Of a stretch of 64,000 bases of DNA, positions 1-62,808 are shown piece by piece. Position numbers and translations under genes: made by a program. Below the pieces are notes generated by a model. That model had not been told where the DNA came from. It saw only the letters and a list, made by a program, of their open reading frames with translations, and did not search any database. The DNA comes from Macrostomum lignano (Eukaryota), in NCBI GenBank assembly GCA_002269645.1, contig NIVC01001425.1:114666-178665 (forward strand), in the 5' to 3' direction. Numbering within the stretch: the stretch's first letter is position 1; each line of letters begins with the position of its first letter.

Positions 1-2734
1 TAGGCCTATTGAAAATAAATATCTATATATCTTAAAAACGATTAATACTTTATTGAAAATAGCAAACTAATTATGGCTACGCTAGAAGCATTCAGAGTGT
101 ACAATCTAAAAATATTTTCTCAAGGGACCCAACCAACCTGTAGTATACACATAATATTTGTTATATGAATTTTGGTGGCTGAATATTTTTTTATAATGAA
201 AATGCATCATCATTGGATGGGGTCATAGCAATTCTCAAAATAGCCGGCTGATCATATTCAACAGAAAACTCTGTCTCTGCTTTCAATATTCATAACTACA
301 GCTTCCATCCTTCATCCATCCATAAGTTCATTTTTTCAATGCATTTTTAAAATTGATAGGCCTATCATGTTTCTTTGAAATATTGCGATAAACAAAATTA
401 GGCCTATGCTTAGAAAAACTGATATCCTACTTTAACTCTTTTTGCATGCTTTGCAATATTTAATTTTGAAAAATTAGTTTTTCTAGCTATATAAGTTATA
501 CCTTATCTTTTCTTCTTAAAAAGTCATTTTGTCTGCTGGCAGACAAAAAGGTGGCAGACGAAATGTCTGTGCACCTGATTCACTAGTCTTGATGTTACTG
601 CATTGCAAAGCATTAGAGGCTGATTGGATTGTCACTGGATGAGCCAATGAAGTCCTGCATGGACTTAGCCTATTTCAAGTACCATAGATATAGTTCTAAC
701 AAGACTTAGATTTATAGACCTAAGCCCTAATCAAATATAAAAGCAAATATATTGACATATAATATTTAGGAAAGAAAGCTTTTTGTATTTTTTCAACAGA
801 ATATTCAATTCACTATTTAAGTAGGAAATAGTGAATGTCAATTTTTTAATAAGCTATTGAGTTTTTTAAATTGATCATATAATCAATAGATATAGACAAA
901 CCATTTTTAATAATATAGGGGGGCCTTGTGAAATTCTTGGCAATCTTCTAGTTTTGCATGTTTAATTATTTTTCTTTTTTAATTTCATTCCAAGTTATGC
1001 TAGTGACATATTAAAAGCACAAAAACATGTCTATGGATAAAAGTCTATCAAATATGATAATAATTGCCCTTTGGGTATTTAGTTTCTAGCTAAAAAGCTT
1101 ATAGCCTTATAGGCTAAAGACAGCGGCCTATTAGCTGCTAGAAATATATAACTTCAATTTTTACTTTTGAAAAAATAGCTAGAAGACCACTAGGCGTAAT
1201 ATATTTACCATTTGGTAATCTTTTTTAGGTTATAACACAAGCTTATTGCCACTATTATCAACTCTTAGCCACTCAATATATTTGTTTTAAAACATAACTT
1301 TAACTTGTTTTAAACCCCTATATATTCTAACTTTATTTATATTTATAGTATTTATTCAGGTTTAGCTATAGGCCTATAGTTGTATAGTTATTATAATGCT
1401 AATTGTAGTTTAAATATTTTCAAATTGTAAAATAATTAAGCCTTTAAATTCAACTTCAAAACTAGAATTAGTAGAAGATTACCATTTTTATACAAATTTA
1501 TGATTCTACAAATATATTTATGGTGAAAAAAACTTATTTAAAGTACCTATTCTTTTTTAACATAATTTATAACTAGGCCAATAATTTATATATCATTGCT
1601 ATTTTCTTTTGTTTTATATGTTGTTTCCTTAATGTTTAACATTGTATTAATTACAAAAGTATTTAAAAACGTTTTATTCAGTTGTAACAAAAAACATTTT
1701 TAAGTTAAAAAATTTTTATTTGTTTTACTTGTTTTCCTCTTATTCATTTTTTTGCCATAAATAAATGAGGACAATATCTAGGAATCTCATTATCACAATC
1801 AGGAAATTAACCTTTGCCATAGAAAATTTTGGTGTATATAATAAGTCTAAGATATATTTTGGTATATACCAAAGGCAAAGCCAAGGTTGGCCTAAGCTCA
1901 GCCTAGGCCTGCCTAGAGTAAGCCTAGCTTGGCAAGTTAGTAGCAGTTTTAGCTCAGGCCAAGGACATCAGGCCAAGGTCAGCTTACCATGGTAATGCCA
2001 AGTAGCTTTGCACTATACTTTCTATTTAGCTTTTATAAAGCTTTTTATTGCTTCCTATAGATTGAATACATGTAGGTGCCATTTTCACTCTGCACTTGTA
2101 TTATACAATTTGGTATTATATAAATAGATAAAGTGAATAGGAAAACAACATGAGACAAATTGAAACTATCAATTTACAAATCCCATGTCATTCCTAGCAT
2201 GTTAGTATATTGCAGTGGTAATTTATATGAGCCAAGTTAGTTATAGTAAACCTAGCATAACTTTCAATTGATTTCCCTTTGGAATTAGATATGTATATCT
2301 ACCAGACTCAGTTCTCAATCAATCTTAGCTCTATAAAAATATGCAGCCAACAATTAGGCCCTATGTCTAAGATTAAATGATTGTGAATTAAGACAACAAA
2401 GAGCTTTAAATTTATTGAATTAAAATACCACTGCATCAAGAAATCCACCATAAGCATACTACTGTATTATCAAATGCTAATAATGATAGAAGATTAACTT
2501 TTTAGCTTATAAGCAAAAAACAGACAGAGAAAAAGTAGCTAAATAGCTAAAAACAAAGGTTGGATTAATAGGGTTGTGGTATAGATTTGGTTGAGCATTT
2601 ATTAACATTAAAAAACACAAAAAATAGAATACATAGTTGCAACAAACAACTGTCACCAAAATACCAAAATGAACTAGAAATTAGGTATAATATTTGCTCA
2701 TAATCATAATTTACTTTGTACTTTTACAAAGGCA

Positions 2735-3411
2735 TTATACTTTGTGGTCACTTTTTAACATCCTTGCATCCGCGCTGTCATGCACACACTTTTGCCTGGC
2801 ATCCTGCCTACCTTTCCTATCCTTGCTATTGTGGAAAAAGTGCTTGACTTGGTGCTCAATGTTGCTGTCAGTAGCACCAATATCCATAACAATTATGGCA
2901 CCTGAAACACGGAGAAAGCAATAGTAAAGCTTTGATTTCACTATGACTGTAATATTGGTTCTGTTGTTGTTTTAATACAGAAAATGGGACTTATGCTTAA
3001 GAATCGGTTCCAGGACCTCAGTGAAGGCAATGTCCTTATTAGTGCCAGAAAAATTATACCTTATTTGCAGGGTGTGGGATAGCAGCCTGGTAATCATGCG
3101 CCAGATGGTGTCATGGCAATTAAGCCTGCCAGCCATCTTTAGAGACTCAACCTGTAATGTAGTAAAAACATGCATTACTTACGCCAGGCTACTAGGGTGC
3201 AAGCAAGTTAAATTCAGAGCGCAACAACTGTTTCACTTACTAAGTTGACTTCTTTTTTAGCCGTGAGGGCCTCCTTGAACGCAGCATATTCCATCATTGT
3301 CAACAAGGGTTTAAATTGGAAACTTGGAGATTGATTCATTGATGAAGTGCAGCTACATCGGTGACTGACATAGTTGGAAATGTCCTTTAGTTTGCTACGT
3401 AGTTGATCCAC
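2735..3411 (-). CDS. Spliced exons of a DUF4806-like protein (5' end unresolved), divergent from MEMO1
   Basis: Exon ending KKEVNL at 3241 (donor GTAAGT) joins acceptor TACAG|GTT at 3151 in phase 0, giving VESLKMAGRLNCHDTIWRMITRLLSHTLQIRYNFSGTNKDIAF. The last exon (acceptor TTTCAG at 2902) reads ATDSNIEHQVKHFFHNSKDRKGRQDARQK. This resembles the DUF4806 pattern as I recall it (L..GG....I.R+...L+S..L...YN+.G...K.AF ... IE..+K.W...AKDR.G.R). The junction into the last exon could not be phased. Confidence 0.5.
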
Positions 3412-3651
3412 ACTTGTTGTGAATTAATAATGGACTGTTGGCAACAGTAAAGCAACTCTTGCACATTTAAGGGGTGTGGTTAATCAAGCAATCTTGTCAT
3501 CTTACCTAACTCGATCGTGATTTAATACCAAAATTGTTGTTTAGCCTTACCTTCGACAGATTGCAGACTTAAACCGTCTCCAATCCGTGGCTCTACCTCA
3601 AGGATATACATTTTTGTATTTTTTATCTTGAACTGCAGCCTCACTAGAGAA

Positions 3652-5619
3652 ATGTCAGCCACCGCCGCTGCCTCCAGTTGGAAGCGCAGAGCCAGCCACG
3701 CCGGCAGCTGGTACACTGACAATGCCTCTGTTTTAGAGAAGCAACTAACCGATTGGCTGGCCAATGCTTCTAAATCATCGGGGTCAAATGAGGACAATAA
3801 TGATGGAGCCTCGGATCCAGTTGTTGATATGAGAGACTGCGGCAGTCTGAAAGCAATCATATCGCCGCACGCTGGCTACAGGTATAGCGGCTCTGTGGCG
3901 GCTTACTCTTATCGACTATTGGCTCAGGCTATTGACAGTTTGAGTAGCAATGCCCCTGTCCGAGTTTTCATTCTGGCGCCTAGTCATCACTATCGATTGA
4001 ACGGCTGCGCCCTCAGCTCTGCCGACTGTCTGGCCACTCCACTTGGCGACTTGGCCGTTGATTTGGCCACCGTATCGGCGCTGAACTCTGCTGGAAAATT
4101 TGAAATATTATCGCGAAATTGCGACGAAGCTGAGCATAGCGTTGAGATGCAATTGCCCTATGTTGCTATGGCAACGGCTAAACTGCGGGCTAGCGGACGA
4201 TTTGCTGGAGTTGTGCCAATTTTGGTTTGTTTTACTACCGTCTTTGATTGTTCATGTTCTCACCGGGTTGTATCTGCTTGTCTATGTCTCACAGCTTATA
4301 TCTGTCTATTTCTCACGGCTTATATCTGTCTATTTCTCACAGCTTATATCTGTCTATTTCTCACGGCTTATATCTGTCTATTTCTCACGGCTTATATCTG
4401 TCTATTTCTCACAGCTTATCTCTGTCTATTTCTCACAGCTTATCTCTGTCTACCTGTGACAGGATTATAACTCATTTAGGTTATGAAATTGCATTGATTA
4501 TTGAAGTAGATTTTACACCTGACTGACTTCCTTCAAACCTCACATTGTTAACTAATAAAGCGTATTAAAGCGCAACCGAACCGAACCTAAAACTTGCTCT
4601 CTAGGTGGGGCAGTGCAGCCCTGCCCAGACTGCTTTCTACGCCGACCTGCTGGCTCCTCACTTGCTGGACCCGGCCTCGTTGTTTGTTGTGTCCAGCGAC
4701 TTCTGCCACTGGGGTCGCCGGTTTCGCTACACTTGGCGCGATCCAGATCCGCAAAGGTTGGGCCATAGACTGCAGAATTCATTCACTATTCTTAGATCCC
4801 CAAGTAGTTATAATCCTTAATCTTCACAATCCCCAGTATTCACAATCCCTAATCTTCACAATCCCTAAAAATATTCACAATCCCTACTATTCACAACCCC
4901 AATTATTCACACTCCTATTCTTTACAATCCCAATATTCACAATCCCCAGTATTCACAATCCCATTCTTCACAAATCCCTAATCTTCACAATCCCAATTAT
5001 TCACACTCCTATTCTTTGCAATCCCCAATATTCACAATCCCTAGTATTCACAATCCCATTCTTCACAAATCCCTAATCTTCACAATCCCAATTATTCACA
5101 CTCCTATTCCTTGCAATCCCCAATATTCACAATCCCTAGTATTCACAATCCCATTCTTCACAATTCCCAATATTCACAATCCCCGGTATTCACTATCCCC
5201 AATCTTCACAATCCGAAATCTTCACAATCCTCTGATTTTAGAATCCATAATTAATGTGTTTGAATTTATCTAGAATATTGGTACTAAAGCAAATATTTTT
5301 ACTGTCAGTAGTCATCTGCGAACATTTTATTGCTTGCAGAGCCGGAGAGCCGATCTGGCAAGGCATCGAGCGTCTGGACCGGCTGGGCATGCGCGCCATC
5401 GAGTCCCTGGAAGCGGGCCAGTTCGCCGACTATTTGGACAATTTCGGCAATACAATCTGCGGCAGAAAGCCCATAGCTCTGCTGTTGTCCACCTTGGCAG
5501 CGGCCGGCGGCGGCAACCGATGGACAATGCGCTTCCTTCGTTACGCCCAGTCGTCCAAGTGTTTCAGTGAAGAAGATTCTTCTGTTAGTTACGCTGCTGG
5601 GGCGCTGTTCAGTCGATAA
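3652..5619 (+). CDS. MEMO1: Protein MEMO1 (mediator of ErbB2-driven cell motility 1), 3 exons: 3652-4224, 4605-4756, 5340-5619; 334 aa
   Basis: Motifs [60 protein letters not shown] and [13 protein letters not shown] junctions (TTG|GTTTGT, CTAG|GTG, AAAG|GTTGGG, TGCAG|A) are phase-consistent and sum to 1005 nt. Confidence 0.93.
4280..4452. repeat. 24-bp tandem repeat in MEMO1 intron 1
   Basis: About 7 copies of CTTATATCTGTCTATTTCTCAC(A/G)G. Confidence 0.9.
4812..5232. repeat. Imperfect TTCACAATCCC-based tandem repeat in MEMO1 intron 2
   Basis: TTCACAATCCC recurs with variable spacers and longer duplicated blocks. Confidence 0.85.
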
Positions 5620-13124: not shown

Positions 13125-14812
13125 GTAGGTAGCGATTGAGCCTTTTAATCAACTCTACGAAAACGCATTGCGATGCTACGCCAAAACGCAAATTTCTCTA
13201 TAGAATCTTCATGTATAAAAACTGAACACAGAATTAGTTTTAGTTTCCGCACCGTTCTTGTTATACCGCCATTCTAATTTCAGCTACTAGTTAAGTTAAT
13301 TAATTTTCGCGACAACTGCCGCCACAATATGCATTTATAGGTGAGCCCTATAAATCTACGCTGCATGCTCGACTGTATTAAACTGTTAAACAAGGCAGTT
13401 AGTTGCACCGTGTTGCTAATTCCATTCTTGTTGGAAGCCATGTGAGAGCGTATACTGTGTGCTCTTGGCTCAAAGCCCCACTCGATCGCTTACCCACTCA
13501 CTGTGGCCCCTGTGCAGCATTTCATTCCTTAGTGTAGATTTAGAAAAATGCTACTAAGGTATGAGTTATGCTACATAGTCTTGTGCAGGTTAGTGTAATT
13601 CAATTTTTTCTGGGGGGTGGGTAAAATTTGCTAGAAAAATATATTTCCTTGGCTTGCTGAGTCACTGGCAATTTCTGTACATGTAATTTCTCTTCTCTTC
13701 TCTCAGCTCTTTCTGCTGCTGTGGATTTTTTGGCAACCAATCTAAGAATTGCTATTTTTAGCCCTAAAAATGCAGCTTTAAATACACTGTAAGGAATAAG
13801 TGGCGAGTTTTATTTGGCTTCTTGAAGTCTAGTAAAACCACAGCAAATCAATTCAAATAGAGCCCCTAATATTAAAAAATGCAGACAGCATTAACTGTTA
13901 GCACGGCTAATTTGTTATTGGAGAAAACTGCTGAATGCTCAACTGTTAGCTCCGTACCACGAGACGAATTGGTAAGCTTACAGATACCATAATCCTCGGA
14001 TAGCTCACTTCTTAGCTACATTATTTCTCTTCAAAACGGAGAGCTGACGACCTGTCTGTTGAGTTAGTTGTAAATCTTATTATTATGTCAATATTGATGA
14101 TGGCCTCTGCTATCTGTGAGTTCCTGTTGATGCAGAAATCCAACTTTCTAACTTTCGGGCACTATGAGTTTTGTCCTAAGCCGAATTGAATGGATATTCG
14201 ATATTGAGTATATTACTCAGTTCATTCACTATTCCCTACGCGCACAGCACAGCAGACTTCTTCCATATCGAGGTTTGTTTATGGCCGATCCTACTCCAAA
14301 CCGTATCCAGACCCAGAAAGCTCACTCTTGGCTGGCTTTGAGGTTAGAACTTAGAAGTGACGCCTAAGTAATATACCTCTTTTGCGTCCTGTTTGGTTTT
14401 ATTCATTCAAATTGTTGCGTCGCCGTCATCAGTCTGACGTAGCAGCGTGTCAGAGATTTTCCATAGACAACCCATAAAAAGTTATAGACAAAGCCATGGA
14501 TGATTAGTAACTATTATATCAACCTAATCTTATAAAGTGGAGTCCCTAATTATGCCCTTGGTTGTTATCCCCTATCCCAAGTCCAATTTTTGTCGCTTTT
14601 TTGCCAGACCCAGCATCCTGGTGTCACTGTGAGCAGAATGACGTATCATTTGTGTACGTAGGTTACTCAGGCTCCACTTTAGCTCGTATGAGCTTAAGTC
14701 GACAGTCCCTTTGTCTATGGCTTAAAATTCAATGAGGTCTTTGCTAAACGCTCAAAATTTGCACGTTTATTCTCGAGTGACTTTCATTCAATCGTTCACC
14801 TGCACCCCGCAG

Positions 14813-23470: not shown

Positions 23471-23865
23471 ATGAGCTTTGGTATACACGATCGTTAAAAT
23501 TAAGACAATACTAGAATGAAAATACGGCTCGTAATTCCACTAAGGCCGCTCAACACCAAGTTTAGATCATAGATATTTCGAGCGTGCATTAATGGTTGGT
23601 TATTCGTAAGTGAGACTTTAGGATAATAGTCCGGCTCATGAGTGCGCGCCCGCATTGTCGAATTTCAGTGGGGCCATAGACAAAAAGGGCATCGAATGGA
23701 GAGAGGGGTTACCGAGGAGAGAGAGACATAAAGACTGAGGTGGTTTACTGGAGTTTGGGCCATAGACAACGAAGTTGCAAACAGGCTGGGGGTTAAGAGG
23801 GTGGAAAGGAAGGAGATGTGGAGAGAAAGAGAGAATAAAACGTAAATAGCTACATTCGCTTGGCC

Positions 23866-25900: not shown

Positions 25901-26155
25901 TAGTATTATTGTATGATTTTGGTGCCTTTGGATCATAGACATTTGTAGCGTGCAGCAATGATTGGAGCAACGACATTAAAAATAATACGTTTCTTGTCAG
26001 AGAGTGCACCAATGATGCATTGGTGCACGCTTGAAATATCTATGGTCAAAAGTGGGTTTTGAAAGTCTTTAAAGCCAGAAGCTGAAGCTACGAGCGTAAA
26101 TATGGTTTAGCTGCGTTTTATACTCCACTCATCTGCCGCTCCATTGAAACGAACC

Positions 26156-31675: not shown

Positions 31676-31735
31676 GCGGGACGAAATCTACTGTTGCCAA
31701 ATGGGAATTCTTAACTTGGCTGACGAAAGCAATTA

Positions 31736-41602: not shown

Positions 41603-44600
41603 CTATACCAGGCAGGCTATTACCATCTTCCCGGAGAACAGTCAACCGATTACGCTCGTTAATGTCTACTACGTCCCACCGGCTACCCGCGCCCTCCGCG
41701 ACGGGAGTGCGGAATCGGCCTTCAATCCAGAGGCAGTCAGCGTCGGTAGACACACGATGGTTGCCGGAGATTTCAACGCCCACAGCAACGCATGGGATCC
41801 CTTCCAACGCGAAGACTCGCTGGGACGCAAACTCGAAGAATGGTGCACCCGCCTGAACCTTGACATCCTCAATGACGGCAGCTGTACCCGCATTAACCCG
41901 GCCACCGGAGGAAAATCCTCCCCCGATATTACTTTCGCTACGAGTGATCTCTCCCGCAAGGTGACCTGGTCCACGGGCCCGAGCATTGGGTCCGATCATC
42001 TGCCCATCTGGATCACGTTACTGCAGAGAGCCACTCCTTTCCAAAAAGCGGGGAAGAGCCGGTACAATTTTAAGAAAGCTGACTGGGGCTCCTATCGCCG
42101 CCACATTGACAAGTCTCTGGCTGGGCTCCCGGCGAGTGACCAGCTCTCCATCGACAAGGCGAACTCTAACCTCACCGATCTGATCACCCGGGCCGCTAGA
42201 GCCTCTATCCCCTTTGGAAACGGTAAGCGCATCAGGCCCCCTTTCTGGAACGAGCGTTGCCAGGAGGCGGCCGACAGTAGAGAAGCGGCCCGGCTGGTTG
42301 CCATGGCGACCCCCGAAGACGCCGATGCTGTTGCGGCCCTTGCCGATGCTAAGGCCGCCGCTGCCACCATCATTAGAGAGGAAAGACGCCAACAATTCCA
42401 TGACTCAGTCGCCTCGCTTGGACCGGAGGATTCGCTGTGGAGACTTATCAAGCAATATGATGGTCGCCTAGAATCTGCCCGCCCGGCGGCCATTTTCTCT
42501 AAGCCGGCTACCGAGCTATCTGCGGCCAAAAAGGCTGTTACCAACCGCCAAAAAGCCGAGCTTTTCTGCGCCGATTACGCGACTGTCTCTAGGCTCAAAA
42601 AGAATAAGGAGGTCGACAGACAAATCATCACTGAAGCCCATGTCGCGACTAACACCCGCGATTGCTCCTGCGGGGGCCTCAGATCGGACATCTGTGCACC
42701 CTTCACCACTACTGAACTCAACTTGGCAATCCGTCAGATCAAAAACGGAAAATCGCCCGGGGTCGACGGCATCAACAACGAACTGCTGAAACAGCTGAGC
42801 GATCAAGGCCGAGGTACCCTCCTCGAACTCTTCAACCGCAGTTGGGCCACCGGCGAGGTCCCTGCCGCGTGGCGACGGGCTGAGATTATTGCTATTCTCA
42901 AAAAAGAGAAGGATGCGAGCACTACCAGCTCCTACAGGCCCATCTCTCTGCTTAGCTGCGTCGGGAAATTGATGGAGCGTATGGTTTCAAACCGACTGTA
43001 TTTTTGGCTGGAGTCCCGTAGCCTGCTTAACCGCAATCAGGCAGGTTTCCGTAAAGGACACTCCACCATGGACTAACTGACGCGGATTACCCAAGCGATT
43101 TTCGATGCTTTCGAACAGAAAAAGCCGGAGCGCGCCATTCTTATCCTGCTGGACTTTGCCAAGGCCTACGACCGAGTGTGGCGCCCGGCCCTCTACGCAA
43201 AAATGGCTCGGCTTGGCGTCCCCAAGCATGTCATCCATTTCATCAAAAACCTCCTATCCGATCGTCGCGCTCGCGTGCGCTGGGGAGACGCGACCTCCAA
43301 CTGGAGAGTCTTTTCCGATGGTCTGCCCCAGGGGTCGGTCATAGCGCCGCTACTCTGGCTTATCTATGTCCATGACATCGACCAAGACATCGACGAGAGT
43401 GTCCACCGGTCACTCTTCGCCGATGACACGGCGCTGCTGGCGACGGGCCGATCTATACATGCCTGCGCCGAGAAGATCCAATCCGCATTGGACCGTGTCG
43501 TCGCGTGGGCTAACAAATGGAAGGTGACGATGAGTCACTCTAAATGCGTTTTCACCACCTTCACGCTTAATCCTAGTGAATGCGGCGGAAAGGTCCTCCC
43601 AACTTTGCACATTGAGGGCCAGGAGCTGAAGTACGATCCAGCACCCACGTTCCTCGGCCTCCGCCTGGACGATCAATTGACCTTTGCTAACCATGTTGAA
43701 GCGGTACGCCAAAAGATGGCTTCTAGGCGGCGCTGCCTGCAAACTCTCTCTGGCAAGGTCTATGGCGCGCACCGGACTACGCTGCGCACCGCCTACACGG
43801 CCTACATCAGGTCGGTGTTCGACTACGGAGCCTCCATCTACTTCAACCATGCCGCGCCCACCCTTAGGGACAAGCTGGAAGCTGAACAACACAAGTGCGC
43901 GCGCATCATCACCGGATGCCTTGGTGTCACGAACTGCCGCTCCCTGCTCGCCGAAGCGGACCTGCCGGCACTGCACCTCCGCGCCAAACAGCTCCTCGGA
44001 AATGAGTTTATCCGTATTATGAGCCTGCCCAACGATGACCCAGCGCGCCAGCTGCTGTCGACCGCGCCACCGCCACGCCTTCGCAGCAGGGCCCATGAAG
44101 CCTGGAAGCGCGAGGTCGGTCCCGGGCTACCTGTTGATATTCTGAAATGGGACGAAGACATCATTTTGAGCGCCAAACCTTGTTTCCGCCGTGTCGGACA
44201 GTGGCTATGCAACCTCGCTGGGTTCCACCTGGAGGACCTCAGGCGCCCTGTCGAGCCTGCGCTCCCGCCTTGGCACTGGCTGGATAAGCAGGTGACCATT
44301 GCGGTCGACCTGGTCGCTGCCACGCGCCGTACAGACCCCCCGGACTTCCGCCGTGCGGCTGCTGAGAGGACGCTGGGCCTCCTCCATCCGGCTGACGTGA
44401 TCATCTGGACAGATGGATCCACCCGACGGGACGGCACCGCGTCTGGAGGAGGAGCTATTATTACCTCGGACCTCCTGAATATATATGAAGATATCTGCGT
44501 GCCGGCTGGCCGCTGGCAAAGTAGCACTAGTGCGGAACTCGTTGCGATCGAGGCGGCCCTGGCCCGCCTGGCCGAGTCCCTCCGTGCTGGCGGCAATCCG

Positions 44601-45305
44601 GTCATCACTGTCAGGCTGTGCACGGACTCCCGGGCCGGCCTTCAAACAATTCTGCGTGGCCCGACCGTCGCGGCGGATGACGTCACCCGGCGTGTCTGGG
44701 CCAACATTGCTGCCCTACCGAGTGGCTGCAGAGTCCATCTCCAATGGGTCCCGGGACACGCTAACATCCCCGGGAACGAAGCGGCTGATGAGCTGGCCGG
44801 AAGAGCTACCGAAGCCCAGCAACAACCGAACACCGTCGCCCCTATCGCCGCTAGGACCGCCATCCACCACGTCCTCCGAGGTTGGCGGAGAATGCGAGAT
44901 AACATGCACCCGCATCCGAGCCCGACGCCTGGCCACGACGACCTCCCGAGATGGGGACAGGTCACTCTCTGCCAGCTAAGGACGCGCAAGTCTCCGCTCA
45001 CGCGCGATACGCTCTACCGTTTCGGCCTGACTACTGACGACCGGTGCATCACTTGTGGAGAGCCGGACTCGGTCGAGCATCTGCTTCTTACCTGTTCAGG
45101 CTACCACCAGGCCCGCATCCGCACCTGGGGTGGCATCAGCGTCGACTGGAATACCGTGGTGGGGGGCGAGGGCAGCCTCCTCTGTGATTATCTGCGCAGG
45201 GTGGGCCGCCAGGAACCACCTATCGACGATCCAGGTGGCAGAGCGGCCCCGGCCCGGCCACCCGCGGGCGGCCGTATGTCGGAGTGAAGAGAGGTAGAGA
45301 GAGAG
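41603..45305 (+). mobile_element. 5'-truncated non-LTR retrotransposon (I-group-like: APE, RT, RNase H, C-terminal Cys/His motif)
   Basis: VAGDFNAH and SDHLPI (APE); KSPGVDGI, YRPISLLS, LPQGSV and LFADD (RT); WTDGS and QWVPGH..IPGNEAADELA (RNase H); CITCGEPDSVEHLLLTC. One nonsense codon at 43074-43076; (GA)n tail; 9-bp TSD AGAGAAGCG. Confidence 0.95.
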
Positions 45306-45405
45306 AGAGAAGCGGCAGCACTCACTAACGATCGAAGCTAAGTATAGTGTTGCATAGCCGCATAGCTCAGCATAGCAAACACAGCTTAGCAAGCACTGAT
45401 CTGAA

Positions 45406-46118
45406 ATGGATACTGATGATGCCAGCGACGAGCAGTTTGTGAATATCGTAATACGCCATCCGTGTCTTGCTGACAAAGCAAAGACGCCTGGTATCGCGGA
45501 GAAGAAAAAGGCAGCATTGCTATCTATCCAGAGCGAGTTGGAGCTTAGTGGCAAGAGCACGGATTAAAAAAAATAAACAAAAAGCTGGCCAATATGAAGG
45601 CAAGACTGAAGGCTAAGGCAGACATCAACAGGACCGGCAACAGGAAGATCCAACTGAAGAAATGGGAGGAGGCGATGCTATACTTCCTGCAGGCAACAGA
45701 AAACCCTGTATTCAGCAAGGTGCCAGGCTGCCAGTCGAGCGGAGTAGCATGTAATGCGGAAGCGTCGCAGCCATTGGACACAGCCGGGCCTATGCAAGCC
45801 GATGGAGATGCTGCAGATCGTGCCCCTCTGCTCAGCAGCGCTGCCACTGCCACTGCCAACAAGCCATCGTCCGCTCGCCTCGCTCCCCGCAGGAGCAGCA
45901 ATGAGAGCCAGGAAACATCTGGGCTCAGCAATGCCGAGCTGCAGCGGCTTGTGCTACTCGAGCAGCTGAAGTATTTCCGACTGAAGAGCCGGTGCCTGCT
46001 GGAGTCTGAGGCTTATCGCAGGTGGACACCACACAGCAGCCCAATTGAGCAGCCGCAGGCAGCGCGATCAAGCGATTCCTGCGAGCGCGCTCCGGAGCCG
46101 CAGTTTTTTCGGCTGTGA
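45406..46118 (+). pseudogene. Harbinger H1 Myb/SANT-like accessory gene, frameshifted
   Basis: MDTDDASDEQFVNIVIRHPCL..., a 1-nt shift in the A-run near 45565, then KLANMKARLK..NRTGNRKIQLKKWE..LQRLVLLEQLKY; homologous to 53824-54462. Confidence 0.85.
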
Positions 46119-46460
46119 ACTGACACTGATACGTGCTTTGAGCAGCTTTGAGCGTAAACTGAGACCTGTTTCGTCTGTTTAAAATTTGAGGCAGAGTGCC
46201 GGTTAAACAAAATCAACTGATAATTACATTGTTGCATCGACTGGTGCGTTTTGAACTTTAAAATTTTAAAGTTAGAACTTTATTATTTCAACTATTTTAT
46301 TGAGGTTTATTCAAATTACACTAGCAGCACAGCAGCACAGCGTGGAACAGGTAAATGGACAGGCAATACAGTAAACTTAGCAGGCAACTCAACAAAAAGC
46401 GTAGCAGTTAGGGAACCGAGCAGTTCTGCGCATAACACTTGAGTGAGTCACTGGTGAAGT

Positions 46461-47519
46461 TCATGGCACGTGGTGGTTGCTATGCCGACGGCGAAAAATG
46501 ATGTCAGCGATTTCCAATCGACGCTGCGTGCCCGCAGCGCGCCTCTGCGCGTCGCCTGCATCGAGCGTGTGGGGCACGTCTGCCACATGTGTCATCTCCT
46601 CCTCGATGGCCTCATCATCGACTGCTCTGTCGTTCAGCTCTCTCGCCACATTGTGCAGAACACAGCAAGCAATGGTGTAGGTTGGGACGCGCTCTAGCCT
46701 CACTCTGATCATGTATTTGAGGATGGGGAAGCGCCGCTTCAACTGACCGAAGGCATTTTCGATAACTACTCTAGCGTTTGAGTGCACCCGATTGAACAGA
46801 ATCTCCTGCGGCTGGTTCGGCTCCTTGAACGGCTTCATAATGAAAGGGGCTATGCCGTAGCCCTCGTCTCCTAGTAACACGACGCCCTGGCGGTTGGAGA
46901 GATCGCCGTAGATTTCAGAATTCTTGAAGATCCGGTTGTCGTGCACCGAGCCAGGCCACGATGCATCTACGCTCGTGAATTTGAAACTCTCGTCGCAAGT
47001 GGCTTGAACATTGATGGATGCAAAGCCCTTGCGGTTGACATACTCGTTCCCCACCGCACCTCCAGGCTTCTCGATCCGTACATGTGTGCAATCGATTGCC
47101 CCGATTGCTGACGGGTACCGGAACTTTTGGAACCAGTTCTGCTTGGCTTCCTGCAGCTGGTGCTCAGATTGTGTCGGCCATTTGATCCATCGTTGCGATT
47201 GAGCACAAATTCGTTGCACAACATGCCAAGCAGTTTTCGATACGGTTGTCTGATGGATGTTGAACTCGTTTGCGATGCCGGTTTGAAAGCCAGGATTCGC
47301 CAGGTATCGCAGAGCAACTTCCATGCGCACCTTAGGTGACAGAGCACCCCCTCGTGATTCCTGACTGTTGTCAAGGAAGCTTGCCGTGAGCAGGTCAACG
47401 CTGTCGCGGGAGAATCTGAACAGCCGCTGGTACTCGCAATCTCGAAGGACATCAGACGAAAGCCTTTCAAGGTAGAGCTTGCGCCTTGAAGGAGCGATTT
47501 CAGGCATAAATTCCGCCAT
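46461..47519 (-). CDS. Harbinger H1 DDE transposase (HARBI1-like), intronless, 352 aa
   Basis: FRFSR, GAIDCTHV, YVNRKGFASINVQ, WPGSVHDNRIF, LLGDEGY, VIENAFGQLKRRF. Confidence 0.93.
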   Translation of the reverse strand: MAEFMPEIAPSRRKLYLERLSSDVLRDCEYQRLFRFSRDSVDLLTASFLDNSQESRGGALSPKVRMEVALRYLANPGFQTGIANEFNIHQTTVSKTAWHVVQRICAQSQRWIKWPTQSEHQLQEAKQNWFQKFRYPSAIGAIDCTHVRIEKPGGAVGNEYVNRKGFASINVQATCDESFKFTSVDASWPGSVHDNRIFKNSEIYGDLSNRQGVVLLGDEGYGIAPFIMKPFKEPNQPQEILFNRVHSNARVVIENAFGQLKRRFPILKYMIRVRLERVPTYTIACCVLHNVARELNDRAVDDEAIEEEMTHVADVPHTLDAGDAQRRAAGTQRRLEIADIIFRRRHSNHHVP

Positions 47520-48762
47520 TCAACTGCAGTTGCTTGCCAGTTGAGTCAGCTAGGTAGCTGTCTCAACATTTTGTGAGCAATTGCTCCGATCTTTTGTCTA
47601 TGGCCATGTTTTTATTCTTACTGACTGGAGTAATTGCTCTGCAGCTGAGAATTTTCTCATGAGTCGGAGCAAATGCTCAACTTATTCTTATTGACCTGAG
47701 CATTTGCTTGAGTTTGAGCATTTGCTCAGTTTATTCATACGGCCTATTATCTAAGAACCTTTCTATTGCCTTTAACCACGATGGAGTTGTACCGGACACA
47801 TCGGTTACATTCATCCTGAAGCTGCTCGAGTTCGCCACAACGCACCCAAACAATCGACGATACGACATTGCCACTATGCGCCAATCTGCTTTGCTTTACC
47901 TGATTAGCAGTTCTGCACAGATAATGCACAGCATAGTAATAACATTTCAGGCTACATAACGCTTAAGGAGAAAATTGCCGGTGAAGATCCTGCCGAAAGT
48001 TTAAACACCCCACTCGGTTAATTCACTGAAATGATTTCCCGGGGAAAGTTGAAGCACCCGCCAAAGTGGCTGTTCAATTTTGCTTGCCTCTGTTTCGGAT
48101 GCTTCATTTCGCTGCGATCACCGTCATGTGCTTTGCGAGTCCGGAAATTGTTTCTTGCCGTTGGCGAGTTTTACTTCCCTGAAGCAGATGTTCTGGGATG
48201 CTGCGTGCGCCTCACCAACTGTTTCTTCAAGGGTTATGTTCAACGAGGAGCAAAGAGCGCTCCTTCGCCGGATAAAGTGCACGATAGAAAAATACTGAAG
48301 CTGAGTGGACAGTGAGCGAACCTGGAGCAAACACTTCACTATTTATCATAGTCAGCTCTTGTCCCGTTCTGTGACTGTTATTTTCCTCTCTGTTTGTAGT
48401 TCAGATGAAGAAAGAATCGTAAATTTTTCTCGAGTTTCCTTATACATGTGCTGCATGTACAGCCTTCCCATTGTGTATTTTCACGACGTTTACTTTATGT
48501 AATAAAACTATTCAACATTTAAAAAAACCGACCCTGCACCCGCCTTCTGACTGCCTATCAAAAAGTCAAATATGATACGAGTATACATTGGCAACTGAAA
48601 GCATGCGCATACGGATGGGCCATAGAACAATGCTTTTAAACGAGCCTCATACTTTTTTCGCCATGAATTGGCTCGTTTCCGGTTTCCCGTTTCCGGTCCT
48701 GAGTTATCAAGTTGTCCTTGGAGGGAGCTTAATTAATAGTTTCATAGCTTTAGAGCTGAGCC

Positions 48763-53076: not shown

Positions 53077-53823
53077 CTGAATTTTCAACTTAAATTTTTT
53101 ATTCTGGAGGTGAGGACAAAACGCAATACTCAGCTGGGACGTTGAAGGATTTTTTATCAATACAATGGGCCGTATGAATAAAACGTGAGAAAATCTTTAA
53201 AGATTATCTTTCGAGCCAAGAATTTCTTTAAAGAAATTCTTTTCCGGCAAGAAAATCTGTTGGAGAAAATCTTACGAGTCAAGATATTCTAGAAAAGACA
53301 TGAATAAAAGTTTCTCGGCTCGTGAGATTTTCTCGGCGACTGCCACTTGGCTGAAAGTTGTCTAGGGCCCAAACCAAGATGTCGGTGACGTGGAATCGAC
53401 GGCCATCTCCTCAGGCTTGGGCGCAGCCCATGCTGTGTCTATGGCTAAAACCACTTGAACACCGAAAATCCGTCCAGAAAAATCCTACTAGAAAGTGGCA
53501 AAATCCATGTGGAGTTTACCTGAACATCAGGTGACAGGAAAGTCACTTTGCTTTGAAATTTTACCCTGAGATTGAGCGTCCTGGCATCGAATGGTTGCCA
53601 ATTTTTTACATGTATATCGTGATTACTCTTTGCAGGAGCCCAGAAACAATGCAAAAAAAACTGCGAGCATGTTATAAGACGCTGCGTGGGGGGTAGAAAT
53701 GGGAGCTGCCGTGTGTACAAAACTGTGTCCTTGGACCGTTCGCAAGCTGAGCGACGTAAATAGCCTACCAGTGAAGTATGCTACCAGATTTCATTGAAAC
53801 CGCGCAATCTTCTCTCGAGAAAC

Positions 53824-54462
53824 ATGTCTGCCGCATCGGATGCCGAGTCTGAAAGTCAACAGGAAGCCGAGGAGGAAGCCGACTACATTGTCAACGTACT
53901 CTCTAAGCACCCGGTTCTCTTATCAAAGAGTAGCACGCCCGTCGTGAAGAAGAAGAAGGAGGCGGCCATTGCAGCATTGTGCGCTGAGTTAGAAATGCTG
54001 ACAGGAAAGCTGTTCGAGACCGGCAAAACATCGAAGAAGATCGCCAACATGAAGACGCGTATGAAGGGCAAGGTGGATCGAAATAGGACAGGGAATCGTC
54101 CCATAAAACTTCTTCCATGGGAATCCAGGTTGGCCCGCATAATGGACGCGGATTCGAATCCAAAAATGTCGCAAACTCCAGGGGCAAGTGCGGCTGGATT
54201 CCAAGCAAGTGCAACCGTCGTCTCGCCACAGCCAGCTGATGAGAGACGTTCACCCTCCGTGCAGCCTAAGGAACCAGCGAGGAAGCGTCGCATGTCTGGC
54301 GAGACAGAGGAGACGGAGAAGTTGGGCAACGCCGATTTGCAACGACTGGTGCTGCTGGAGCAGCTGCGCTACGTCAGACTGAAAAGGCGACTGGTGATGG
54401 AGTCTCAGGCGAGCAGACCTGCTCTTCGCCCTCCGTCGTACGGAAACGGGTACCAGGATTGA
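53824..54462 (+). CDS. Harbinger H2 Myb/SANT-like accessory protein, 212 aa
   Basis: IVNVLSKHPVLL..KKKKEAA..KKIANMKTRMK..NRTGNRPIKLLPWE..LQRLVLLEQLRY. Confidence 0.85.
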   Translation: MSAASDAESESQQEAEEEADYIVNVLSKHPVLLSKSSTPVVKKKKEAAIAALCAELEMLTGKLFETGKTSKKIANMKTRMKGKVDRNRTGNRPIKLLPWESRLARIMDADSNPKMSQTPGASAAGFQASATVVSPQPADERRSPSVQPKEPARKRRMSGETEETEKLGNADLQRLVLLEQLRYVRLKRRLVMESQASRPALRPPSYGNGYQD

Positions 54463-54965
54463 CGGCCCTGCAGACGTTAGTAATTGTTGTTAGTAATTCA
54501 GACCGAAAAAATGCGACGAACAGCATATAGGTACTTGTTGTTTTGTTGATCGCTCTAAGGCTGAAAGTCGCATATATGTACCACTGTACTGTTTCTTGTT
54601 TGTTATTTAGACAGAGAAAATGTGACGAAGAGAAGACATTTGTCTGTTGCTTTGTTGATCGCTATAAGGCTGAAAATCACATACTTACGACTGCTTGTTC
54701 TTTTCAAAATATATATGAAAAAAGCAACTAAGAGGATATGTAACAAAGTTTGACAATCTGAGAAAAGTGAATTATGTCAAGTGGAAGATAGTTTTCACGT
54801 CTTGTTACTGAAAATAATACCAGAATCGCTCTAAGGCGGAATCGGCGAGGCGTACATGTAAAGTGGATTACATTTTTGGACTAGTACAACGGTAACATTA
54901 TGAACAATATGTTTGTAAACACCTGTCACCTTCACATGAGTTCCAATGTCCAAAGATGCAGTATA

Positions 54966-56065
54966 CTAGACCATAGCAGCGATCTCGTTTCGCCGCTGTT
55001 GTCCGCGAAGACGCAGTTGCTGAGCTCCGTCACCAGCGTTGTCATCCTCATTAGTCAGCTGGTCGTCTGCATCACCGATGTATTGCGGATCGTCTATGTC
55101 TTCTTCATTCAGAAACTTGGCGACATTGTGAAGCACGAAGCATGCCAAGATGCATGTTGGTGCCTTGTGCAGCTGCAGTCGGATACCGTAGCGCAGAATG
55201 GGGAACCTTCTCTTGAGCTGCCCGAACGACCTCTCGATCACGACTCTGCTCCTGGCATGTAGCACATTGTACCGTTGTTGCTGCTCCGTTTCGGGTTGCG
55301 GATACGGCGTCATTAGGAACGGTGCGATTCCGTACCCAGAGTCACCGAGGAGCACTCCAGAATTGACTCTGGTCGTGAGTAGATGACTGGAAAGTGTTTA
55401 ACTTGCTACGTAAAATATATAAAGTTTACCATTTGCCCACTTGGAATCAGATTCTAAGTATGAATACGAGGTACTCACGCGTACAGCGCCGAGTTCTTGA
55501 GCACTCTACTGTCGTGCACCGAGCCAGGCCAACTCGCATCCAAACTAGTGAACACGCACTTCTCGGAGCACGTTGCCTGAACATTGATGGAGGGAAACCC
55601 CTTCCGGTTGATGTACTCGTCACCGGCTGCTCCTGAGGGCTTTTCGATCCTCACATGCGTGCAGTCAATTGCCCCGATGGCCGACGGGAAGCCCATTGCT
55701 TCAGTGAACTGTGCCTTAGCACGGTTCGCTGAAGCACCTTCCTGTGGAAATTGAATCCATTCGTGAGACAGCCGCGCGATACTCTGCAGGACGTCCCAAA
55801 CAACATTTGACACCGTGCTTTGATGAACACCTGTCTCCTTGGCAACACCGGATTGAAAGCCAGGGTTGCTCAGGTACCGCAGCGTGATCTCCATCTTCTG
55901 TTTCGGTGTCAGCGCACCGCCCCTTGTCTCGGAAGTATGTCCTAGGAAGCGCGTTGTCAGAAAGGTCACGTGATCCTCAGTGAATCGATGAAGCTGTCTA
56001 TATGTCTCCACTGGAGTGGCCTGTCGGGGCAGGTACTCCTTGGTCTTTCTGATCTGAAGGAACAT
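54966..56065 (-). CDS. Harbinger H2 DDE transposase, 2 exons (56065-55479, 55386-54966), 335 aa
   Basis: GAIDCTHV, WPGSVHDSRV, intron GC|GTGAGT...TTTCCAG|T, LLGDSGY, VIERSFGQLKRRF. Confidence 0.9.
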
Positions 56066-57099
56066 CTCGTGTCTCGTGTTACGGGCGCTGAAGATTCGCT
56101 TGAGCCAGAGAAAGAGTTGCTCGCATAAAACTCAAGTGTCGGCTCTCTCGGCGAGAAAATCACGTCTTTTATTCATCAGAAAGCAAGAAAATCTTTTCCT
56201 CGTGAGATTTTCTTGCCGAGCAAATCTTTTCTTGTGAAAGCTCGAGATTTTCTTGGCGAGAAAATCTTGCAAGAAACTCGCAGTTTTTTATTCTTATAAA
56301 CGCAAGAAATTCTTGGATTTCTTGCAAGAAAAAAATTTCTTTTTTTTATTCATACGGCCCAATATGTGCAAGTATGCGCACAAATGCGCACAAATTGATG
56401 CGGATTGAAGCTTGCGGAGATACGAACAAGGTCATTATCACTTTTTTGCCCAAGGAGTAATGTCACTTTTAGGTATGTGCATGTAACAAACTACGAGTAG
56501 GACGTTAAACGACATTGATTTCTTGCTGTTGCGTATCGTTGTGAACTATCTTGTTCGATAATGAAATATAAAGTGTTGCCATTTGTTTTTACTCAGTTCA
56601 TTTATTTATTTAGAAATCATCTATTAGCACCGGTGCAGATAAATTAAATAAACAATTAGACTATAGGCTACTGCACCTGTGCAACCGAGGCATACGTACT
56701 GTACGTAATATGGCATCACCCCATGAATTCATTTATTTCGTCGACAGAGTGGCTGAGGGCTGCATTTACTGACCGAGATAAAGATTTGACTGACCTCGAG
56801 TCAAATTCGGTAGTCTTTAGTAGAAAACCAAGAAAAAGAGAAAAAAGAAAAGAGAGGAAGGCGACGATTAGATCGCAAGAAAGAAAGGAGAGGCGACAAA
56901 TTTCTTATACGATATACTTTTCTGATAGACTTTTATGGATTTGCCACGTGATTTTCAAGTACGAGCTAGAAATTGACCACGACTTCTTGGAGTCTCTGTT
57001 CATTGAGCCGAATGCGAGCGTTAAGGGCGAAGATATACGCAGGCAAAAGATGCCCACGGAGAAGAAGTTCGATCAGAAAATAGCTCGTAGAAGACAACT

Positions 57100-58250: not shown

Positions 58251-58529
58251 TTTATTCAAGTGCAAATGAACATGTGCTTATGTAGCTACGCTTGTATATG
58301 CAGCTGGGAAGCTGTCTATGGTGCTGACGGCCCTTTTCTACAGGCCCTCAGAAGGGATATGAGGTAAAAAGCCCATGGGAAATAAAAGAATAAGAAAAGA
58401 AAATAGCCAGAGCTGAGGCTACGAGCAGACCAAAGTCGGCTGCATTTTATTTTCCAATAAACCTCCGCCTTTTATTTGTTGGCTAAAGACACAACACCTA
58501 CCACCTTGTTACGAGCGTATATTAAGTTT

Positions 58530-59644: not shown

Positions 59645-60269
59645 CACGTTTGAAAGTAATCCGTCGGACCGATTTTCTTCATTTTGTACCATTTAATTGG
59701 AATTTTATCATACGAGCGTACTGTAATGTATGTGTACTTGATTTTGCATGTGTGCTCCGTCAATGGTGGCACCATGGATCATGCAGATATCTATGGGTTG
59801 TGCCAACCACACAGTTACTCGTAAATAAGGCAGGGCGCATGCCAGTGAGGAGTTCCTCACGCTCATTTGTTGCTCACGATAAACCACGTCTTGCAATAGA
59901 TCGTATGATTAATTTTTTTGTTTTTATTAACGAAAGGGTCCTCTAAAAGGTGAAAAAACAGGTATTTTCCCTATCAAACCAGTACTTTGTATGCAGTTGT
60001 AGCTGCTTTATTGTCTATGGCCCAAAAGCTAAAGCTGGTATTTTGGCCGAAATGAATAGTATAGTCATCTGTAATAAATAAAGAATTTTATGTAAATAAA
60101 GCATTTTTCAGGCTGCAAGAAAGTGCGAGCAGGAAATAAAATAATCGATGGGAAGGCCTGTGGAGTTTTCTTATCGTCTATGGTCGAAACAATTGGCTTT
60201 ACGTCAACCAAATAAATAATACAGGCAAGAGACAGATAAATCTTCAGTTCTAGAGTTTTTTTTAACTCA

Positions 60270-60560: not shown

Positions 60561-61739
60561 AGTGCATGTGCCCTTGTCTGTTTGGCAGTGCGCGGTGCAC
60601 TTTGGGGCTGGCTGGGGGTTGGCCTGGCCAGCTCAGCAGTTGCACGTAATGAGCAATTTATCTTATTGTTGTTGGTTAGATCGGAATTAGCGCAGAACTC
60701 GGCTCGCGCTCACAGCATTGTGCTAGCTTGCTTGTCGGCCGCCACTTTTCTATTTCTACTAAGTCTGTAATAATCTTTAAGTCTGAAAGTTAAAACTACA
60801 TATTCTGGCATTTATAATAAACGATTTCTACACCTCTACTACTCAGCTTAGCTACTTATTTATACAAAACTATTGAATCTAGCAGTTTTATATCGTATGT
60901 CAACATTTTGAATTACCCCGCCCTCATTTACCATCAACACTTTCCAATTTACACGGCGCGGTTTGCTGATTATACAGACAGATATGATGTCAAGCGCTTT
61001 TTTAATGATAAAATATTACACGCTCGTTCCTGTTTTTTCTCTTATTACTATTATTAACTAGTAGGTCACCACATGTACGCACGTATTTTCCTAGAGTAGG
61101 GGACGGCTATTTTTTAGTAGTCCGGAGGGACTATGTAACTTTTATTGCGTTAAATTAGGGCTAGCAAAGTTCGAATTGCGTTAAAGCGGTAGACTTGGGG
61201 ACGGGGAAATCTTTGTCTGTGGCCAAGCCACCATTCTATGTGTGAGGTGTGTGCAATCTTCTTTTCGGTATGGCAGGCTCATGGGGTGGTGGGCACGTAT
61301 CAATCGATAATTTCGTTTGTAAATTGATTGGGGCTAGCAAAGTTCGAATCGCATCAAAGCGGCAGGCAGACATAGGGACAGGGAAATCTTTGTCTAGGTC
61401 CAAGCTGCTTCTTTTGGGTAGGGGCTGGGGTGATGGGTGGATTAATCGACAATTACGAGCTAAGTTTTTTATAGTTTTTACAGTGTATAATTAAGAATTA
61501 GACTGCTGCAGCAGCAGTAGTAGCAGCAGATGGAGTTAAAAAGTGAGGGAGTGAGGGAGGAGGAGTGAGGGGAGGATACTTTTGGGTGGCTATTTATTGG
61601 GTCTCTTCTTTTAAGTATTGCAGCAGACCAGACAGCTAGCTCATTGACAGAAGACTGTGCTATAGTGTCTATAGTATCTATAGTGTCTAGCTAACTACTC
61701 GTAGCAATTTGATTGACGGCAATGTCGTGGGTGATGACA

Positions 61740-62035
61740 CTAGCGCCGGCAGCGGCACAGTAACAACTGCAGCAGCAGCAGCAGGGTGAGCAACACTGTA
61801 TCTACGCATTTACGTTAGACTCTTTTTCAGTGCTAAGAATGTTTAACATCTTTTCACCAAGGATAGCATAGCACTTCGGCACTTCGACGGCGGCATATTC
61901 TTCTTCTTCGACAAAGCCGAAGTCGCAGCAACCCAGTAGTCTGCAACGCCGACTGCATCGCCACTGTTGCTGCCTCGAGAACCTGCGGCGTCTTTCAAAA
62001 AACCAACATCGTTTATGGTAAAAATGACCACGTCC
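61740..62035 (-). CDS. Candidate terminal exon pair (62035-61858, 61801-61740) of an unidentified gene
   Basis: Acceptor TTCTCTGCCTTCTCAG|G and a 56-bp GT-AG intron. One frame gives GRGHFYHKRCWFF..CYAILDTVLLTLLLLLQLLLCRCRR*; a second frame is also open. Confidence 0.25.
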
Positions 62036-62808
62036 CTGAGAAGGCAGAGAAGGCGGTTCGAAGCCAAAACAAGTCATTACCATAGAGAATCCACAGAATT
62101 TTTAATCCTTCGCTTTCCTCGAAGAAAAAAAGAAAAAAAAGTGTGCAGTGCAATCTTCCTTCACTAGATTTTCTCAGCTCACCTCACCACCACCTGCGCA
62201 CACCACACAGCATAACGGGAAAAACACCGGTGGAGATGATTCTGGCTTACAACCGCAGAACTTTAGAAAGTTGGACTTTCGAAAGCCGGTCAGGTTTTAT
62301 CTCTGAACTTTAGAAAAGAGAAAGAGGTGAATTCCTGCTAAAGTTATTACTCGAACTGGTCGGGTATCGTACAGACTTCTGGTCAATGGACAAGTCTAGA
62401 AAAAAATAAATAAAATAAAATAAATAAAATAAACATAATAAAATAAATCATCAAAGCAGATTTACCAGGGCACATTAAACCAGACCCTAATTAGCCACCG
62501 CCCAGTCTAAAGAACTCTCAAAGCATCAAGCCAAGGAGAGACCCAGGCAGCGGACACTGATGACAGGGTTGACGCTGATCCTGGTGCTACAAGCAGGGCG
62601 ATTTTGCTTTGCACGAGAGCGCTTGTAATATTCTCTCGACAAGGGACAAGTTTCAGTCGAATTGAACTTTCGTCTATGGCAAATCCCATGTTTGTCGCGA
62701 GATTCAACTGTGGGGGTTTGGATTTCGGCTTATTTAAAAAAGGCTTCGCTTTGCTTGCGACTTTGAGCCCTCCGGTCTTGCTTGCGGGTAAGTGTTTAAA
62801 TATAGAAG

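Follow-up and report, generated by a model that had tools for sequence, protein, structure and literature searches.

Host transcription-factor (TF) sites are found within the promoters of transposons, as in Drosophila gypsy, which carries Su(Hw) sites. IHF serves lambda attP as well as several bacterial transposons, and the Ruby motif CTGTTTCA lies upstream of nematode 21U-RNA genes. In the flatworm Macrostomum lignano, long terminal repeat (LTR) retrotransposons use canonical host heat-shock elements (HSEs) in their promoters (PMC12801592), a precedent from the species studied here. For the tyrosine-recombinase (YR) elements known as Cryptons, the termini of stramenopile CryptonS are TATGG, no terminal repeats were found in animal Cryptons, and a core-type YR site has two inverted recombinase-binding arms, each ~11-13 bp long, with ~6-8 bp of spacer between them (Kojima & Jurka 2011, PMC3212892). 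Here we analyzed the 8-mer GTCTATGG (on the other strand CCATAGAC) in a window of 64,000 nt of M. lignano DNA (contig NIVC01001425.1), which, together with 15 kb of the paralogous sequence L003, was all the DNA of this genome that was examined. L003 (contig NIVC01001775.1, published assembly) is 98.5% identical to the window, being its paralogue or an allele, and is collinear with window positions 13781-23595, 29835-30564 and 31787-36435. We regard it as having about an even chance of being right that GTCTATGG is the site of a lineage-specific DNA-binding factor, used in the promoters of unrelated transposons in the Macrostomum lineage. The kind, a host cis-element in transposon promoters, is known; the motif itself appears to be undescribed.

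GTCTATGG has features in common with each of these systems and differs from each. As with the HSEs of the M. lignano LTR retrotransposons (PMC12801592), a short host-type element stays intact in the regulatory parts of unrelated families while its surroundings diverge, and as with host TF sites in transposon promoters, homologous elements of other hosts lack the word, although GTCTATGG was not matched to a known motif and its distance to the ATG is unusually fixed. It resembles the CryptonS termini, as the original prediction had given them and as they are described (PMC3212892), in containing TATGG and in lying near the ends of YR elements, but it sits off the junctions (TTCTAAA and AATGG), is also found in DDE transposons, and animal Cryptons are reported to have no terminal repeats. 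Like the arm-type and IHF sites of lambda attP, it is a specific site tens of bp from the crossover, beside recombinase repeats, and common to unrelated mobile elements; unlike them, it is eukaryotic and has a putative binder, its position tracks ATGs better than element ends, and gene-less elements lack it. With the Ruby motif it shares the sharply conserved 8-mer, the occurrence on both strands and the high local density, but it has no start signal at a fixed distance downstream and is tied to the starts of protein-coding genes.

Counting both strands, we found 33 perfect copies in the window, against 1.14 on average and at most 4 in dinucleotide-preserving shuffles, an enrichment of ~29-fold, and after masking 11.3 kb of tandem repeats GTCTATGG was the most over-represented 8-mer. 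The 9-mer TGTCTATGG was present 26 times (0.34 expected) and the 7-mer TCTATGG 46 times (5.0 expected). The original prediction had listed at least 32 copies; all 32 coordinates are correct and the copy at 43758 (+) had been missed. Its figure of ~2 copies expected at uniform composition holds, while its ~15-fold over-representation is below the value from the shuffles. The copies are given below with their context, YR1, YR2 and YR4 being Crypton recombinase genes, block B a Crypton derivative, H1 and H2 Harbinger transposons, and L001 one of three Logan contigs used for comparison (L001, a Harbinger relative; L004 and L005, Crypton relatives). TIR stands for terminal inverted repeat, ORF for open reading frame, LINE for long interspersed nuclear element and RT for reverse transcriptase.

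1029..1036, plus strand: AT-rich region, without gene context
4763..4770, minus strand: between two tandem arrays
14461..14468, minus strand: 264 nt 5' of the PTP-like ATG 14732; kept in L003
14713..14720, plus strand: 11 nt 5' of the PTP-like ATG, ~35 nt beyond a repeat shared with the distal EFA promoter
19786..19793, plus strand: the variant TTCTATGG (19808) lies 14 nt further on
21669..21676, plus strand: kept in L003
22004..22011, plus strand: kept in L003
23168..23175, plus strand: variants at 23091 and 23140; adjoins an inverted YR2-like Crypton fragment (23210-23463)
23674..23681, minus strand: distal promoter region of YR1, -185 from the ATG, 79 nt from the element 5' end
23760..23767, minus strand: proximal promoter region of YR1, -99 from the ATG
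25581..25588, minus strand: YR1 3' subterminal region; composite, with AGGATAAT 6 nt away
25685..25692, plus strand: YR2 5' repeat cluster; composite GTGCAGAAATG-N5-GTCTATGG
27745..27752, minus strand: ~111 nt 3' of the YR2 reading frame
27855..27862, minus strand: 3' of YR2, 110 nt from the copy at 27745
30597..30604, plus strand: block B, 30 nt inside the left end
30680..30687, minus strand: block B, -370 from ATG 31057
30857..30864, minus strand: block B, -193 from ATG 31057
30940..30947, minus strand: block B, -110 from ATG 31057; composite with GTGCAGGAATG
31271..31278, minus strand: block B 3' repeat module; composite
31536..31543, minus strand: block B 3' repeat module; composite
31668..31675, plus strand: ~105 nt inside the right end of block B
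31864..31871, minus strand: ~85 nt outside block B; composite AGGATAAT-N3-GTCTATGG; kept in L003
40094..40101, plus strand: 5' of the THAP ORF
40324..40331, plus strand: -218 from the THAP ATG 40550
41564..41571, minus strand: H1, 183 nt inside the left TIR; at -123 of the MADF/Myb-like ATG 45406, sense CCATAGAC, with the nested LINE removed
43758..43765, plus strand: within LINE RT coding sequence; possibly chance
47596..47603, plus strand: H1, 141 nt inside the right TIR; at -77 of the transposase ATG 47519, sense CCATAGAC; kept in L001
50486..50493, minus strand: ~180 nt 3' of the YR4 stop; composite with GTGCCGGAATG
53437..53444, plus strand: H2, 271 nt inside the left TIR; at -379 of the Myb-like ATG 53824
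58314..58321, plus strand: 278 nt 5' of an ORF for a LINE RT C-terminal fragment
60013..60020, plus strand: -286 from ORF 60306
60176..60183, plus strand: -123 from ORF 60306
62672..62679, plus strand: without assigned gene
26038..26045, plus strand: 7/8 variant ATCTATGG, its tail good; at -110 of the YR2 ATG 26156, 9 nt past a palindrome
48620..48627, minus strand: 7/8 variant TTCTATGG; -136 from the YR4 ATG 48763
40436..40443, plus strand: 7/8 variant TTCTATGG; -106 from the THAP ATG 40550

Aligning the copies gave an asymmetric consensus of ~16 bp, T-GTCTATGG-Y-N-AAAAC, with information restricted to positions -1..+14. A T precedes the word in 26/33 copies and AAA falls within +9..+14 in 21/33 (background 8%), so the predicted extension of most copies to NN-AAA stands in this looser form, the exact NN-AAA tail being present in 12/33. 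One-mismatch variants were at background, except that A or T at position 1 was mildly in excess, and we therefore take the specificity to be sharp and the core to be TCTATGG. Within +/-120 nt of the copies we looked for an initiator, a TATA box and a small-RNA start and found no further conserved signal.

As had been predicted, 18 of the 33 copies fall in 19786-31864, 13 of them in two blocks missing from L003, and none of the 33 lies within a tandem array. Neighbouring copies are often spaced 83-110 nt apart. An all-against-all BLAST of the flanks (+/-150 nt) yielded a single small family of 5-7 copies, leaving ~25 copies with unrelated flanks; within that family the flanks are 34-47% identical (ungapped), with the 9-mer intact in 5/5 copies. 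The Crypton units are without mutual DNA similarity and their proteins share just 31-52% identity. Given this divergence and the decayed flanks around an intact 9-mer, we take the word to be kept, or acquired, independently. In the region collinear with L003, 7/7 copies are identical between the two sequences, as expected at 98.5% identity.

To relate the copies to gene starts, we used 11 gene units chosen independently of the motif, with the ATG as reference point. TCTATGG is found at -77..-136 from the ATG in 7/11 units (binomial P ~8e-7 at the window's own motif density): at -99 (also -185) for YR1, -110 for YR2, -136 for YR4, -110 (also -193) for block B, -77 for the H1 transposase, -123 for the H1 MADF/Myb gene once the LINE is removed, and -106 for THAP, where the YR2, YR4 and THAP distances rest on variants carrying TCTATGG, the one at YR2 being ATCTATGG. 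The distances predicted for the YR1 ATG (99 nt here), the YR1 stop (182 nt) and the YR4 stop all hold; the one given as 111 nt past the YR2 stop does correspond to a copy ~111 nt 3' of that reading frame, which carries an internal stop.

The same placement recurs in relatives. L004, related to YR1 at 48% identity, carries the motif at -94 and -184 from its ATG, and L005 (41% identity to YR1) has one at -96 from the true ATG and another 121 nt past the stop; neither has detectable DNA similarity to YR1, yet both place the motif alike. L001 (77% protein and 71% DNA identity to H1) retains GCCATAGAC at the aligned position. By contrast, the 28 kb around homologous Harbingers of other hosts (L008, Lineus longissimus, 21 kb; L007, 6.2 kb; and L002) are devoid of copies, as are the 114 nt leading up to the ATG of a 44%-identical YR1-type Crypton (L009, JGI metagenome 3300040801) and two gene-less TIR elements of the window (27.95-29.80 kb). 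The word is thus tied to the host lineage and to gene-bearing elements and not to a transposon superfamily. L009 carries at positions 45-53 a canonical CTATAAAAG ~65 nt before its ATG, Macrostomum-type elements having GTCTATGG ~95 nt before theirs.

Three properties expected of a promoter site were therefore found together: a non-random position with respect to gene starts, conservation while flanks diverge, and sharp specificity. Under the reading we favour, the ~16-bp site T-GTCTATGG-Y-N-AAAAC would be read as DNA by a sequence-specific binding protein that belongs to the Macrostomum lineage and is presumably encoded by the host. One or two copies are present in the untranslated stretch from the terminal repeats to the first ATG of unrelated transposons, typically 77-136 nt upstream, the carriers being three or more Crypton families, one Harbinger (at both of its genes), a second Harbinger and the THAP-gene unit. 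The site would most likely act close to the promoter, whatever its orientation, by bringing the host transcription machinery to transposon genes, and we attribute the pile-up at 19.7-31.9 kb to several short Crypton units, each with its own copies, packed side by side. The original prediction had named such a host factor site, co-opted by transposon promoters, as its alternative, and it is this alternative that the spacing of -77 to -136 from ATGs and the absence in other-host homologues now favour.

Several observations weigh against a promoter site. The label 'promoter' rests on distance to ATGs, and a permutation test over all ATG-ORFs of >=120 aa gave a modest signal (14 observed vs 8.7 expected, P ~0.03). 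The orientation flips, the sense strand reading CCATAGAC in YR1 and GTCTATGG in L004 and L005, which is unusual at a fixed distance; it speaks for recognition at the DNA level regardless of direction and against a signal in RNA, and it rules out a directional core element. Two host-like genes were in reach: the 2 kb before the host RRM gene are free of the word, and at the PTP-like ORF copies lie at -11 and -264. Copies are also found 110-290 nt 3' of YR genes, and seven copies lie 3-6 nt from family-specific subterminal repeats (GTGCMGRAATG or AGGATAAT), the geometry expected of a recombination accessory site.

The word was also compared with more familiar kinds of element. A tandem-repeat or satellite origin was rejected, as the copies lie outside arrays and are enriched after masking, and a dispersed repeat or the terminus of a miniature inverted-repeat transposable element was rejected for ~25 copies, whose flanks are not alignable. 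A structured RNA or tRNA-derived element was rejected (no Rfam match at gathering score, no tRNA in the window), and so was a polyadenylation or terminator signal, with AATAAA 15-35 nt from only 4-5 copies and on inconsistent strands. No convincing match to GTCTATGG was seen among the YY1, RFX X-box, SMAD, Cdx, SOX and TEAD motifs; the Cdx/Abd-B site TTTATGG is one mismatch from the word, and the Cdx-like variant GTTTATGG is at background here. In the searchable literature we found no paper linking Macrostomum to the word, and the 8-mer alone matched primers only. No motif is present in the ~400 nt given for each of the cloned M. lignano promoters (PMC5730564, Supplementary Data 1), a comparison that is uninformative.

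The Crypton features of the window are as follows.

23595..25630, plus strand: YR1-family Crypton; its 5' end GTTGG abuts the arm at 23594, its 3' end is approximate
23866-25398: YR1 gene, interrupted between its two ORFs (24985-25044), otherwise looking intact, the sole YR to do so
23210-23463 (minus strand), 23866-25398, 26111 to ~27634, 29799-30194, 31057-31170 and 48760-50302: Crypton tyrosine-recombinase genes or fragments
30565..31786, plus strand: block B, a 1.2-kb gene-truncated Crypton derivative with flanks TTCTAAA(AA); filled in the window, empty in L003 (10470-10478)
26004..26028: perfect palindrome GTGCACCAATG-ATG-CATTGGTGCAC in the YR2 5' region, with inverted 11-nt arms and a gap of only 3 nt
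23584..23594, plus strand: half-site GTGCATTAATG, with the window/L003 breakpoint directly after it

In the YR1 element, copies of the 8-mer lie 79 nt from the 5' end and ~45 nt from the 3' end. The subterminal inverted word of this family, AGGATAAT, is found at 23620(+), 25530(-) and 25595(-), with another at 31875 (6 matches in the window vs 2 expected). L004 also begins GTTGG, 250 nt before its ATG, the equivalent distance in YR1 being 271 nt. The YR2 reading frame (27151-27640) has an internal stop (…KIAAT*SPDG…) ahead of the conserved C-terminal tail, and YR4 is split into at least four frames. Block B is made up of a YR4-like N-terminus and a 3' repeat module and contains the 8-mer and an exact GTGCANNAATG site seven times each; its outermost 8-mers lie 30 and ~105 nt inside the ends, with none at the junction. 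The circle junction reconstructed for block B is the 13-mer GTTCTAAAAATAG, which recurs at 25491-25503, 94 nt past the YR1 stop.

The second difference between the window and L003 is a 6.2-kb segment (23596-29829, holding YR1, YR2 and two nested TIR elements) missing from L003 (9762-9787), whose two junctions share only AATGG, the left one directly after GTGCATTAATG (23584-23594). A clean insertion of this segment was rejected: the 18 nt before its right junction encode TAKMIQWRD, homologous to TTKMLQWR of YR4 with third-position (synonymous-type) differences, so that YR3 coding sequence continues upstream of the junction and L003 carries a deletion or a recombinant. YR3 has 21 extra in-frame nt in L003. 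GTGCANNAATG has 18 occurrences vs 1.07 expected, all in Crypton neighbourhoods: at 23584, in the YR2 5' region (ten, 25638-26028), in block B (seven, 30727-31576) and 3' of YR4 (one, 50444-50540). The perfect palindrome at 26004-26028 is built from this word. A homologous arm is followed, from the same nucleotide, by three different sequences, namely the partner arm (YR2), the YR1 5' end GTTGG (window) and YR3 coding sequence (L003). The palindrome and this junction behaviour are as expected of a recombination site, which makes GTGCANNAATG a better candidate than the 8-mer for the Crypton recombinase and, judging from sequence, a candidate core recombination site of YR2/YR4-type animal Cryptons. 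Such candidate sites appear to be undescribed for animal Cryptons.

The Harbingers and gene-less elements provide the comparison outside the Cryptons.

41381..47744: Harbinger H1, with TIRs GGCCGTATGAATAAA, the same TIR word as in H2
41603-45305: LINE nested in H1, a 5'-truncated non-LTR element with APE, RT and RNase H, a 9-bp target site duplication AGAGAAGCG and a (GA)n tail
53166..56361: Harbinger H2, with perfect 18-nt TIRs
27949-28012 and 29708-29802: ends of the outer gene-less element, each with clustered TTAACTAGTTAA palindromes; no 8-mer
28350-28427 and 29326-29388: ends of the inner gene-less element, nested in the outer one, with CCCCGGGG clusters and inverted ends of the form ACAACTAGGGATGTCGA; no 8-mer

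The Harbinger copies of the 8-mer lie 141 and 183 nt (H1) and 271 nt (H2) inside the TIR ends, and in H1 a copy is embedded among GAGCAATTGCTC subterminal repeats.

The original prediction had proposed that GTCTATGG is the crossover or binding site shared by the YR elements; read as the crossover itself, Cryptons would integrate by recombination within it, and copies would mark the junctions of element and flank. Copies do lie on both sides of YR1, YR2 and YR4, and CryptonS elements are known for TATGG terminal direct repeats. The present data nevertheless contradict this reading and leave it hardly any probability: in the filled-versus-empty comparison of the window with L003, the junctions of block B are at TTCTAAA(AA), and the copies closest to them lie 30 and 105 nt further in; the 6.2-kb difference joins at AATGG directly after the GTGCATTAATG half-site. 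With junctions elsewhere and copies subterminal, the 8-mer is not the crossover site, and the word marks element boundaries only loosely, in that it lies in the untranslated flanks of transposon genes. Nor is there the geometry of a core-type (lox/FRT-like) site, the closest inverted pair of 8-mers (30597+/30680-) being separated by 75 nt, and 17/33 copies lie away from Crypton coding sequence, where 17 in ~42 kb is still a ~19-fold enrichment. An accessory (arm-type) role, with the Crypton recombinases or an IHF-like host architectural factor binding the 8-mer beside family-specific core sites, fits the subterminal positions in block B and YR1. It also fits the seven composites, of the forms GTGCMGRAATG-N4-5-T-GTCTATGG and AGGATAAT-N3-6-GTCTATGG, the common 83-110 nt spacing, the H1 copy among GAGCAATTGCTC repeats and the TATGG ends of CryptonS (PMC3212892). 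We nevertheless consider it unlikely, as the distance is fixed to ATGs and not to element ends, the orientation to the element end is inconstant (YR1 vs L004/L005), the junctions are never at the 8-mer and 17 copies are away from Crypton coding sequence. The word is moreover present in DDE elements and 5' of the THAP gene, both without a YR, and the two gene-less TIR elements, necessarily mobilised in trans, have no copy. A broader version, in which a sequence-specific host architectural factor, equivalent to IHF but eukaryotic, recognises the 16-mer and has been recruited by Cryptons and Harbingers beside their own recombinase or transposase repeats for both transcription and transposition, seems to us rather improbable; the composites, the copies 3' of YR genes and the 83-110-nt spacing would follow from it. 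Those 3' copies and the seven composites keep both the accessory role and the architectural factor in play.

Two further readings dispense with the recombinases. The word could be a functionless passenger, frequent through the copying of a few young and abundant transposon families; the window is almost wholly nested transposons, perfect copies could be young, and the 7/7 collinear copies are identical in L003, though at 98.5% identity this is expected. What makes this quite improbable is that ~25 copies have no mutual flank similarity, that the 9-mer is intact in 5/5 copies whose flanks have decayed to 34-47% identity, that the same position before the ATG recurs in Harbingers and in Crypton families without DNA similarity whose proteins are 31-48% identical, and that no cloud of one-mismatch decay products is seen. 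An upstream motif of small independent transcription units (a piRNA-type, Ruby-like mini-promoter), or a site for a boundary or insulator protein in transposon-rich DNA, would suit a sharp 8-mer in both orientations with A/T-tract flanks around its core, dense in a transposon-rich cluster (18 copies in 12 kb). We judge this very improbable, as outside -1..+14 no position or composition signal is found within +/-120 nt, no fixed-distance start-site signal is seen, and the reading does not predict the link to protein-coding ATGs. A lineage-specific factor site in transposon promoters thus remains the reading we favour.

The remaining features describe the setting, a mosaic of nested transposons almost throughout.

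16972-19068: RRM ORF, whose aligned part is identical to a Macrostomum lignano protein; clearly a host gene
ATG 14732: PTP-like ORF
ATG 40550: THAP ORF
4279-13124, 32123-34558 and 37788-39918: very large tandem arrays
9171-13124: tandem array of the 16-bp unit TCCAGTTTGTGAATTG, x248
5651-8798: 27-bp and 32-bp tandem arrays
37808-39898: 18-bp-based array (reported periods 36/54/90 bp), filling a 696-aa minus-strand ORF

The window also contains (TGCT)78 and (TATC)100, and the strand composition is strongly skewed across 4-14 kb. At 14570-14678, 112 nt are 81% identical to the distal end of the EFA promoter fragment cloned from M. lignano (PMC5730564, Supplementary Data 1), so that this widely used promoter fragment starts within a dispersed repeat.

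In the transgenic flatworm model M. lignano, promoters are to this day picked by hand. If the window is typical, GTCTATGG would occur about once per 2 kb, among the most frequent specific sites of the genome, and would offer a handle on the transcription of its very large transposon load. If the favoured reading is true, the word would add another case of unrelated transposons converging on a regulatory word specific to the host lineage. Independently of that reading, the GTGCANNAATG palindrome, the recombinant junction and the filled/empty pair at block B provide concrete candidate recombination sites for animal Cryptons.

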